Source of the DNA: Macrostomum lignano
Taxonomy: Eukaryota
NCBI GenBank assembly: GCA_002269645.1
Contig: NIVC01001772.1
Location: 62,001 to 126,000 of the forward strand
DNA length: 64,000 bases
Reading direction: 5' to 3'
The notes under the pieces were generated by a model that was not told where the DNA came from, did not search any database, and saw only the letters and a list, made by a program, of their open reading frames with translations. A program made the translations under genes and the position numbers. Below, one piece after another: positions 12,501 to 15,500 of the stretch (the first letter of the stretch is position 1; every line of letters starts with the position of its first letter).

Positions 12501-15500
12501 ATTCAAAAGTATTTGGCGGGAAAATTATGCTGCTTGCAGGATTCTGTCTTAGTGTCTGTCTTAGTGTCTGTCTTAGTGTCTGTCTTAGTTTCTGTCTTAG
12601 TGTCTGTCTTAGTGTCTGCCTTAGTTTCTGTCTTAGTGTCTGCCTTAGTTTCTGTCTTAGTGTCTGTCTGTCTGTCTTAATGTCTGTCTTAGTGTCTGTC
12701 TTAGTTTCTGTCTTAGTGTCTGTCTTAGTATCTGTCTTAGTGTCTGTCTGTCTGTCTTAGTGTCTGTCTTAGTGTCTGTCTTAGTATCTGTCTTAGTGTC
12801 TGTCTGTCTGTCTTAGTGTCTGTCTTAGTATCTGTCTTAGTGTCTGTCTGTCTGTCTTAGTGTCTGTCTTAGTGTCTGTCTTAGTATCTGTCTTAGTGTC
12901 TGTCTGTCTGTCTTAGTGTCTGTCTATCTGTCTCTATGTCTGTCTGTCTGTCTGTCTATCTGTCTGTCTGTCTGTCTGTCTTAGTGTCTGTCTATCTGTC
13001 TCTATGTCTGTCTGTCTGTCTGTCTGTCTGTCTGTCTGTCTGTCTGTCTGTCTGTCTGTCTGTCTGTCTGTCTGTCTGTCTGTCTGTCTGTCTGTCTGTC
13101 TGTCTGTCTGTCTGCCTGTCTGTCTGTCTGTCTGTCTGTCTGTCTGTCTGTCTGTCTGTCTGTCTGTCTGTCTGTCTGTCTGACTGTCTGTCTGTCTGTC
13201 TGTCTGTCTGTCTGTCTGTCTGTCTGTCTGTCTGTCTGTCTGTCTGTCTGTCTGTCTGTCTGTCTGCCTGTCTTAGTGTCTGTCTGTCTGTCTGCCTGTC
13301 TTAGTGTCTGTCTGTCTGTCTGTCTGGCTGTCTGTCTGTCTGTCTGTCTGTCTGTCTGTCTGTCTGTCTGTCTGTCTGTCTTAGTGTCTGTCTGTCTGTC
13401 TGTCTGTCTGTCTTAGTGTCTGTCTGTCTGTCTGTCTGTCTTTCTGTCTGTCTGTTAAAGCACCAACTACTCAATTCTTATGATGGCATTACAAAGCAGG
13501 CAGAAGGCCAAAGCAGCTCACCTCGAACTCGCCATCGTCATTCTCATTCGGCCTTCGCATGCAGAGCAGCCTCGGCAGGATGTCCAGAAACAATTTCCTC
13601 ACCCAAGGAGCCATCACGTGCGTGTCGGGGCCGCGGAAGTGCACATTGAGCACCACAACGGTGACCACGATGGACAAGGTGACCAGGATCATGGTGAACA
13701 GCAGGTACTTGCCAATTAGCGGTACAACTAGCGATGTTGGGGGTATAATCTCGGCCAGGAGCAGAAAGAACACAGTCAGAGCTAGAAGAATCGAAATTGA
13801 TAAGCTGATCTTTTCGCCGCTCTCCGATGGCAGGTAGAAGACGGTCACCGTTAGGAAAGAGATGCTCACGCAGGGTATGATCAGATTGACAGCATAGAAT
13901 AGGGTCTTTCGTCTCAGGGTAATGTTGAATGTTACATCTGAAAGTTTTGTTTAAATGCTAAAAGTCCTGTCTATGGTCGAAACCTTGGCTTCCTTAATCA
14001 AAACCACACTGGTTTCTTAGTGTCTATGGCCGAAACCTTGGCTTCCTTAATCAAAACCACACTGGTTTCTTAGTGTCTATGGCCGAAACCTTGGCTTCCT
14101 TAATCAAAACCACACTGGTTTCTTAGTGTCTATGGCCGAAACCTTGGCTTCCTTAATCAAAACCACACTGGTTTCTTAGTGTCTGTGGCCCAAACCTGAC
14201 TTTCCCAATCAAAACCACACTATTGTCTATGGCCAAAAGCCAGTTAAACAGCTTCGTATGAGGGTAAGTTCACGCACCTGGAAACGGCTCAACGCAGCAG
14301 GGGTAATAAATATCGTCTCGAATAGCGGACAGCTCCAAAATGTCCCACTCGCCGCTGGGATAATATTCGGACAAGTCTACAGCATAGTCTATTGTCACTT
14401 TGCCCGACATGTTGCGCACTAGCGGAGACTTTTGAGCGATGTGCTGCAGATCCACTGATAGGGTTGAGTAGGTTTAATTTCTTATATTTGCTTGTTCATC
14501 TGTAGATCACAGATGACGATTTCATGTTTTCATGTTTCATATAGTTTATAAGAGCTGTAATTCTTAGAGAGAGGGTATCGGTAGAGAGGGTAAGAGATTG
14601 GAAGATGTGGAAGGAATGGGAGACAGAAAGGGAAAGGGTGGAGGGTAGAATGAGAAGAAAGGGGAGAGAAGAGCCAGGGAGATAACGAGAGAGGAGAGAT
14701 AAGAGAATAGAGAAAAGAGAACAGGGAAGAGAGATATAATAGAGGAGGGTTGAGAGAGGAGAGAGGAGAGAGGAGAAGAGAGAGAAGAAGAGAGAGGAGA
14801 AGAGAGAGAAGAGAGAGGAGAAGAGAGGAGAGGGGAGAGGAGAGGAGGGAGGACAGGGGAGAGGAGGAGGAAGGGGAGAGGAGAGAGGAGGGGAAAGGGG
14901 AGAGGAGAGAGGAGGGGGAAGGGGAGAGGAGAGAGGAGAGGAAAGAGGAGGGGGAAGGGGAGACGAGAGAGGAGAGGAGAGAGGAGAAGAGAGAGGAGGG
15001 GAAAGGGGAGAGGAGAGAGGAGGGGGAAGGGGAGAGGAGAGAGGAGAGGAAAGAGGAGGGGGAAGGGGAGACGAGAGAGGAGAGAGGAGAAGAGAGAGGA
15101 GGGGAAAGGGGAGAGGAGAGAGGAGGGGGAAGGGGAGAGGAGAGAGGAGAGGAGAGAGGAGGGGGAAGGGGAGAGGAGAGAGGAGAGGAGAGAGGAGAAG
15201 AGAGAGGAGGGGAAAGGGGAGAGGAGAGAGGAGAGGAGAGGTGAGAGAAGAGGTAGAGAGAGAGAAGAGAGGTCACGGCGTATTAAAATATTATTTTAGA
15301 AAATAGGCTACCGGTTTCAAGCCTCTGGGCTCTTCGTCAGGCCAAAAATCAGTTGTAACGGCAAACGGAGTTATATGTAATGGCCCTATAACAATGAAAC
15401 AGATTGCCAGATCCAACCAGAGTTAGAAGCAGACGAGAGGCATGTAAAATCTCAAACAAATGTCACCTTTATGCCCGTCGTAAGTCCAGCTGCCAAACTT

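Follow-up and report, generated by a model that had tools for sequence, protein, structure and literature searches.

A minimal type I hammerhead motif in a nicotinic receptor intron of Macrostomum lignano, probably a solo remnant of a Penelope-like element

Within a 64-kb window of the Macrostomum lignano genome (contig NIVC01001772.1, positions 62,001 to 126,000; "the window" means this whole stretch of 64,000 nucleotides), a 38-nucleotide (nt) motif with the complete core of a minimal type I hammerhead ribozyme lies in intron 5 of a nicotinic acetylcholine receptor (nAChR) gene, BOX15_Mlig000862g1. We think it likely that the motif is a solo, 5'-truncated hammerhead remnant of the type carried by Penelope-like elements (PLEs), present in intron 5 of one lineage of the receptor gene and without effect on the receptor. 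An earlier reading of the letters alone (the sequence-only reading) had also proposed a solo PLE remnant, and the proposal has been strengthened by three results: a 67-nt difference between paralogs that coincides with the motif, a hammerhead of the same layout next to a GIY-YIG open reading frame (ORF) in the same genome, and a large covarying family of relatives in metagenomes. From these we infer a PLE as the source of the window copy.

Read directly, the minus strand from 15343 to 15306 is GGC-CUGACGA-A-GAGCC-CAGA-GGCUU-GAA-ACCGGU-A/GCC, where the slash marks the predicted cleavage site. Every position of the type I core (C3-A9, G12 A13 A14, A15.1-U16.1 and H17) is present, and the sequence observation is confirmed, exactly as the sequence-only reading gave it; the standard numbering also places the putative cut where that reading had put it, between 15309 and 15308 (A17/G1.1). 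The parts are as follows, all on the minus strand.

15306..15343: minimal type I hammerhead motif, 38 nt (sequence read, descriptor scan and model R1, for which see below)
15343-15341: 5' strand of helix I, GGC, pairing with GCC at 15308-15306 (3' strand), 3 bp
15340-15334: core box C3 U4 G5 A6 C7 G8 A9, CUGACGA (sequence read; the C7 core recurs in locus L008, see below)
15333: unpaired A between A9 and G10.1 (sequence read); a nucleotide here is a feature of PLE minimal hammerheads (PMC4209133)
15319..15332: helix II, GAGCC (15332-15328) with GGCUU (15323-15319), 5 bp, the first pair being the wobble G10.1·U11.1
15327-15324: loop 2, CAGA (sequence read)
15316..15318: core G12 A13 A14 (sequence read)
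15310..15315: palindromic helix III element ACCGGU, A15.1 to U16.1, which needs a second copy to form its 6-bp helix
15309: A17, with predicted cleavage between it and G1.1 (15308)
15280..15305: A/U-rich tail UAUUUUCUAAAAUAAUAUUUUAAUAC, 26 nt, part of the inserted segment (sequence and pairwise alignment)
15280..15346: presence/absence segment of 67 nt, hammerhead plus tail (multiple and pairwise alignment, BLAST)

Our self-written hammerhead descriptor, run over both strands of the window, matched at this place only. Three of the four PLE minimal-hammerhead features that lie outside the descriptor concern the sequence itself, and two of these are found in the motif, namely the extra nucleotide between 9 and 10.1 and the palindromic 15.2-16.2; the third, the conserved G10.1-C11.1 pair, is replaced by the wobble G15332·U15319. 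Of the hallmarks named by the sequence-only reading, the extra A after the core and the palindromic stem III stand, while the 3-bp helix I is not a published hallmark, since helix I of PLE hammerheads has 4 to 5 bp in S. mansoni and 2 bp in D. virilis (PMC4209133). The motif is alone: descriptor scans and R1 revealed no second copy in the window or in the 9.8-kb nAChR gene, as had been claimed for the window, and Tandem Repeats Finder, the descriptor and R1 revealed no tandem unit spanning 15280-15346. The claim that the window lacks a PLE reverse transcriptase (RT) also holds as far as its 85 ORFs of at least 100 aa go, among which we saw no RT-like or GIY-YIG ORF, although no dedicated RT-domain scan was made.

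The motif strand is the pre-mRNA strand of the nAChR gene, and the orientation is thus sense; the motif starts 123 nt past the intron 5 donor (15466), in agreement with the approximately 125 nt of the sequence-only reading, and far from either splice site. Two further M. lignano copies of the gene were found on other contigs via the nAChR protein cluster. In L005 (NIVC01000049.1, gene g3), the 1371 nt covering exon 5, intron 5 and exon 6 match the window at 99.7% identity, with no difference in the hammerhead. L006 (NIVC01001893.1) shows 98.5% identity to the window down to 15347, where the BLAST alignment breaks. About 120 nt of its intron 5 align through ...AACTGATT, after which L006 has "GA" in place of the 67 nt of the window (15346-15280); homology then restarts at GCCGTGACCTCTCTTCTC (in L006, GCAGTGTTCTCTCTTCTC) and continues into a CT microsatellite. 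Within the aligned stretches, the donor of intron 5, the initial ~120 nt of that intron and the exon sequence downstream are all retained in this copy without the insert. Judging by these alignments, the hammerhead and its A/U-rich tail are a discrete, recent presence/absence segment, and its presence or absence between near-identical paralogs would both date the insertion as recent and mark the edges of the segment. We infer an insertion rather than a deletion. The CT/GA-rich satellite begins 8 nt past the 3' end of the insert and varies in length among paralogs. PLEs are known for strong 5' truncation, and canonical ones have their hammerheads close to the 3' end; for the Naiad/Chlamys clades, a bias of insertions toward microsatellites and terminal "tails" of 30 to 40 bp are documented (PMC8557442).

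The search for relatives in M. lignano covered ~165 kb of the 764-Mb genome, ~100 kb of it outside the window (21 kb came with the contig of a transposase copy described below). In these ~100 kb, of which ~50 kb are unrelated to the nAChR locus, the descriptor found one further independent hammerhead, in L008 (NIVC01000257.1) at 1853-1888, which reads GC-CUGACGA-U-GCCAC-UUGU-GUGGC-GAA-ACAUGU-C/GC; fewer than 0.01 chance matches of the exact architecture are expected in that amount of sequence. It has in common with the window motif the C7 core, the 1-nt bulge, a 5-bp helix II with a 4-nt loop and a 6-nt palindrome; its helix I has 2 bp and its 10.1-11.1 pair is G-C. An A/U-rich stretch with CUAAAAAAUAUAU follows on its 3' side. 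On the same strand, the stop codon of a 121-aa ORF (1372-1737) lies 115 nt upstream of the hammerhead, and this ORF has a GIY-YIG domain (PF01541, E = 3.7e-5, with a score of 24.4 bits where the cutoff is 22.6); searching the PDB with its sequence gave no match. Because a C-terminal GIY-YIG endonuclease (EN) is followed by a hammerhead, L008 1372-1888 is, by its domain order, the 3' end of a 5'-truncated canonical EN+ PLE. A tblastn search of the window with this endonuclease gave no match.

BLAST of the 79-nt element against all sampled M. lignano loci matched the homeolog alone. Model R1 was built from the two M. lignano hammerheads and run without filters over ~150 kb; the window motif scored highest (60.6 bits, with a model built partly from the motif itself), and no further convincing copy appeared in the ~150 kb, the next-best matches reaching 13 to 14 bits (E ~0.4 to 0.7). 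Among these weak matches, one of 13 to 14 bits inside the coding region of an alpha-mannosidase gene (GH47) was unconvincing, and one at 35248-35307 has CUGACGAU but lacks helix II. We discounted pair counts from the alignment of the two sequences, since the descriptor that found both demanded pairing. Our literature searches turned up no work on Macrostomum hammerheads and no usable information about PLEs of M. lignano. The modest value of the comparison is that such hammerheads, one of them beside a GIY-YIG ORF, occur in this species, and we found no paper that links them.

The same architecture is widespread beyond this genome. Joint Genome Institute (JGI) metagenome contigs were scanned with CCTGACGANG(N12)YGAAACNNGTHGC, a pattern of 19 fixed bases in which the core is fixed by the pattern itself. 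The scan gave at least 127 matches on at least 120 contigs, with 107 distinct sequences among the matches listed; a handful was estimated by chance. Helix II forms 4 or 5 of its 5 pairs in 89 of the 107 distinct sequences listed, with many compensatory changes, and helix III is palindromic in 93 of them. In an alignment of 73 rows (71 metagenome sequences plus the window and L008 hammerheads), helix II cells were paired in 86% of cases, against 20 to 40% with slid partners, and none of 500 shuffles reached the helix II covariation score; pair 10.1-11.1 is G-C in 65 rows and G·U in 8. Of the 127 matches listed, 116 have U as the bulged nucleotide, 7 have C and 4 have A; at position 11.1, 118 carry C and 9 carry U, and 109 have the palindrome ACAUGU. 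By these sequence features, the window motif belongs to the architecture of the family, in which its bulged A, the G·U at 10.1-11.1 and the palindrome ACCGGU are unusual. Searching with CCUGACGA-N-G(N12)Y-GAAAC-NN-GU-H-GC as the fixed architecture retrieves a large covarying family that the Rfam hammerhead models miss, and such a search is useful for annotation and warns of false negatives.

Many of the metagenome matches come from few related JGI sample series, which we take to be termite-gut samples, and this suggests that the matches may stem from one or few host genomes. In L044 (Ga0209628_10257513), four hammerheads of the same architecture follow each other head to tail at 1468-1765, 87 to 89 nt apart, an array like that of a retrozyme or satellite with a very short unit. 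L020 and L031 contain one pair of inverted copies each, separated by ~95 and ~265 nt; tandem and inverted arrangements have been described for PLE hammerheads and retrozymes (PMC4209133). In L025 (Ga0194135_10022053, ~70-1985), a hammerhead with a bulged A and the palindrome ACGCGU stands 208 nt past a stop-free stretch of 558 aa with RT-like motifs by eye (FYILPKVHK, FLDD); as Pfam gave no hit at E <= 0.01, we do not call it an RT. A tblastn search of the metagenome loci with the GIY-YIG ORF of L008 gave no match.

The motif is an ordinary further member of the known PLE-type minimal hammerheads (Cervera & de la Pena 2014, PMC4209133). It shares with them a predicted type I topology, the full core, the 9/10.1 nucleotide, a helix I that is very short and lacks loop 1, an A/U-rich 3' flank and, in place of a stable helix III, a short palindrome dependent on a second copy (PMC4209133). 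The published copies are likewise mostly solo and taken as truncated PLEs (PMC4209133), and in the same genome the L008 copy resembles them further in its position 115 nt downstream of the GIY-YIG ORF. The window copy differs in its G·U at 10.1-11.1, where the published ones have a highly conserved G-C (PMC4209133), and in its surroundings, as no pseudo-long terminal repeat (pLTR), RT or EN is found around it, whereas theirs lie in the pLTR/3' region. Its ACCGGU also departs from the ACAUGU dominant among the relatives retrieved here.

Tandem hammerhead repeats, to which newt satellite 2 and Schistosoma Sm-alpha also belong, offer another comparison. Like the motif, such repeats and the metazoan non-LTR retrozymes are type I with a weak, palindromic helix III, and they act as double hammerheads (PMC7229834); the L044 array has the same architecture in tandem. 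They differ in being tandem, while the window motif is single, lacks loop 1 and has 3 bp in helix I. In canonical metazoan hammerheads, helix I has 6 bp and there are loop-loop contacts (PMC4209133). An evolutionary link of retrozymes to PLE pLTRs is argued in the preprint 10.64898/2026.07.22.740005.

A different parallel is offered by amniote introns, where HH9 and HH10, like the motif, are sense hammerheads in a protein-coding gene, a position that prompts the idea of pre-mRNA processing. Their Rfam entries are presumably RF02275 (Hammerhead_HH9) and RF02277 (Hammerhead_HH10). They are deeply conserved, stable monomers with tertiary contacts and efficient cleavage. The motif, in contrast, is lineage specific (it is absent from the 98.5%-identical paralog L006), has no stable helix III, would not adopt the hammerhead fold as a monomer according to folding predictions and has no Rfam match at E <= 10. 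The hammerhead of chrysanthemum chlorotic mottle viroid (CChMVd) is a viroid ribozyme with stable helices. Its sole relation to the window motif is the extra nucleotide between A9 and G10.1 (De la Pena & Flores 2001, cited in PMC4209133), which is compatible with the hammerhead core (PMC4209133).

Folding was evaluated with nearest-neighbor energies, which ignore tertiary contacts and proteins. The predicted minimum-energy fold of the monomer (-10.7 kcal/mol, z-score -1.03) pairs core C3 U4 G5 with helix III residues, and the hammerhead fold reaches -1.6 kcal/mol. ACCGGU cannot form a hairpin in the monomer and pairs intermolecularly in the predicted dimer, for which the double-hammerhead fold has -23.5 kcal/mol against a minimum of -27.9, a fold in which helix II of each molecule is open to invasion by AGCC of its partner. 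The dimerization ensemble free energy of -5.6 kcal/mol corresponds to a predicted dissociation constant (Kd) of ~1e-4 M (~0.1 mM), which by our own estimate would be far above plausible nuclear pre-mRNA concentrations, and ~0.1% of the dimer ensemble is in the double-hammerhead form. With C instead of U at 11.1, the double hammerhead becomes the minimum-energy fold (-28.5 kcal/mol), a predicted effect that fits a C-to-T decay mutation in a dead copy. With one copy in the gene and in the window, no double hammerhead is possible in cis, and a heterologous partner needs the same palindrome; ACAUGU of L008 would pair with ACCGGU at 4 of 6 positions. In vitro, a single minimal hammerhead shows no detectable self-cleavage, and dimeric or trimeric ones cleave weakly and mostly at non-physiological Mg2+, although host factors could raise the activity in vivo (PMC4209133). 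Taken together, these predictions and assays make it most likely that the motif is inactive.

The favored history would then be the following. The hammerhead-bearing 3' terminal piece of a PLE, or a non-autonomous element with the same hammerhead, would have entered intron 5 in sense orientation, 8 nt away from a CT microsatellite, in one of the lineages of an nAChR gene that had recently been duplicated. What remains would be a heavily 5'-truncated piece of ~65 nt, the 38-nt minimal hammerhead plus a 26-nt A/U-rich tail. In active elements, tandem copies are thought to form double hammerheads that process the element's own transcript. The window copy is alone, has G10.1·U11.1 instead of the usual G-C and prefers non-catalytic folds in the predictions, and for these reasons its most likely fate is passive transcription with the intron, followed by removal in splicing and by degradation, so that the receptor is unaffected. 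For receptor biology, the motif would thus be of little importance. Solo minimal hammerheads of the PLE type have already been documented in many animals, in thousands per genome, and this one behaves alike.

Three other explanations have to be weighed. The motif might be a chance resemblance of ordinary intron sequence to a degenerate hammerhead consensus, and a match to a loose descriptor (helix III of any 1 bp) would indeed be meaningless by itself, since simulated sequence gives 1.4 such matches per 64-kb window; even when helix II must have at least 5 bp, 0.23 are expected per window. The modest fold z-score and the lack of an Rfam match also agree with chance, as does an analytic estimate of ~1e-4 strict-motif matches per window, or about one per 764-Mb genome. 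However, adding the 6-nt palindromic helix III left no match in 300 simulated windows, and the exact architecture (C-core, 1-nt bulge, helix II of at least 5 bp, 6-nt palindrome, helix I of at least 2 bp) had none in 40 Mb of simulated sequence. Moreover, of the 67 nt in a discrete indel, 38 belong to the motif, and its C7, bulge, 5-bp helix with 4-nt loop and 6-nt palindrome, none of which the descriptor required, are common to the PLE-linked L008 copy and recur in the large covarying metagenome family. The Rfam result (no match to Hammerhead_1, Hammerhead_3, Hammerhead_II, HH9 or HH10 at the gathering threshold in the whole window, nor at E <= 10 in 15200-15450) was rejected as evidence against the motif and is uninformative, because the GIY-YIG-linked control hammerhead of L008 is missed too; the Rfam hammerhead models do not cover minimal hammerheads. 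We consider a chance origin extremely improbable. It is rather unlikely, if clearly less far-fetched, that the source was another hammerhead-bearing repeat, a tandem "non-LTR retrozyme" or satellite or a SINE-like (short interspersed nuclear element-like) sequence, that arrived by retroposition or templated repair. The insert has no coding remnant and tandem arrays of the same architecture exist, as in L044, and if animal retrozymes derive from PLE pLTRs, as the preprint 10.64898/2026.07.22.740005 argues, the two sources share hammerheads. Against this, neither the window nor the paralogs contain a second copy or a tandem one, the sole relative found in the M. lignano sample adjoins a GIY-YIG ORF, and vertebrate retrozymes are depleted from introns, again according to that preprint.

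The remaining explanation is a functional ribozyme that, with a second receptor pre-mRNA, an abundant PLE or retrozyme RNA or host chaperones, cuts intron 5 co-transcriptionally and reduces or tunes nAChR output in the paralogs with the motif. The sequence-only reading had proposed trans-cleavage as a possible means of tuning receptor splicing or output. All core nucleotides are intact, the orientation is sense, the motif is identical in two paralogs, and the host factors mentioned above could assist it. However, the identity between g1 and g3 reflects the 99.7% identity of the whole intron and not selection on the motif, and L006 does without the motif. The gene offers no partner copy, the only PLE hammerhead found in the M. 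lignano sample has an incompatible palindrome, and the G·U at 10.1-11.1 and the 3-bp helix I are unfavorable. With a predicted Kd of ~1e-4 M, an active fold near 0.1% of the dimer ensemble and published single copies that do not cleave and dimers that cleave weakly (PMC4209133), we regard the trans-cleavage proposal as unsupported and judge a functional ribozyme very unlikely. Its most specific form, in which RNAs of PLEs of the same subfamily or RNA chaperones make the motif active in vivo so that a fraction of nAChR pre-mRNAs is cleaved in intron 5, seems less probable still; were it true, g1 and g3 would differ from the motif-free copy by a ribozyme-dependent difference in expression.

Several points weigh against the solo PLE remnant as well. 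Seen among three paralogs, the 67-nt difference may also be a deletion in L006, and no target-site duplication is evident at the segment. The window has no recognized RT or GIY-YIG ORF, so that the PLE link would depend on L008, where no RT was found upstream of the GIY-YIG ORF. Neither another ACCGGU copy nor a relative of the 67-nt segment appeared in the ~165 kb sampled of the 764-Mb genome, and ACCGGU occurs in none of the 127 metagenome matches listed. Helix II has 5 bp, against 7 to 8 bp in the S. mansoni and 6 bp in the D. virilis PLE hammerheads. The inactivity, finally, is predicted from nearest-neighbor thermodynamics together with published assays on other copies.

The exon model of the nAChR gene (minus strand) was rebuilt from splice sites and homolog alignments, and its translation equals PAA64225.1 (P0121) at 100% identity across 556 aa. 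Its parts and the adjoining satellite are listed here.

19315-19282, 17442-17288, 16385-16341 and 16263-16154, minus: exons 1 to 4 (exon model)
15648-15467, minus: exon 5, the Cys-loop exon (exon model)
15466-14455, minus: intron 5, with GT at 15466/15465 and AG at 14456/14455
14454-14278, minus: exon 6, the loop C exon (exon model)
13937-13522, 11233-10904, 9870-9792 and 9648 to ~9508, minus: exons 7 to 10 (exon model)
14741..15272, no strand assigned: CT/GA-rich micro-/minisatellite (Tandem Repeats Finder and alignments)

Identity of window 17234-13042 to L005 and L006 is mosaic, 98.5 to 99.7% in the central nAChR gene and 92 to 95% in the flanks, which suggests gene conversion between the copies or an assembly in which haplotypes and homeologs are mixed. 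By Pfam, the neighboring genes are OSTM1-like, nicastrin, a single-exon GH47 alpha-mannosidase (28331-29947, minus strand), a myosin head, a PfkB-family kinase (probably adenosine kinase) split by repeat-filled introns and S-adenosylmethionine synthetase; the coordinates of these genes in the window are 858-2818, 4691-7719, 28331-29947, 42218-43651, 46659-50584 and 62677-63261.

The window holds 77 tandem-repeat rows, so that long repeat-derived "ORFs" are common and misleading. On the plus strand, tandem repeats of 16 and 20 bp (CACTCTGATGAAATGG and CACTCAGATGAAATGGCACC) at 30056-31506 hold 25 of the 28 plus-strand CTGATGA boxes of the window; they have no GAAA box and no helices and could trap motif scans. 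A 28-bp minisatellite unit, CAGCCTCCCAGATCCCCAGTTGCTGGGC, and its variants form at least four separate arrays (5059-5869, 8451-8943, 44701-45047 and 51761-52753), on both strands.

Two transposase ORFs are also present. On the minus strand, 33060-34127 is an intact 355-aa ORF of the IS630/Tc1-like type (DDE_3, HTH_Tnp_IS630), whose sole annotated copy elsewhere is P0245 on NIVC01000269.1, 99% identical. About 1.75 kb around it (32595-34349) are absent from the homeologous contig L004, and from this comparison the segment seems to be a DNA transposon, possibly active, that inserted recently. Also on the minus strand, 54251-55369 is a transposase ORF of the Mos1 mariner type (HTH_48, Transposase_1), flanked by arrays of one 37-bp tandem repeat (53508-54186 and 55497-55941); the mariner element appears to have inserted into this minisatellite or to be bordered by it.

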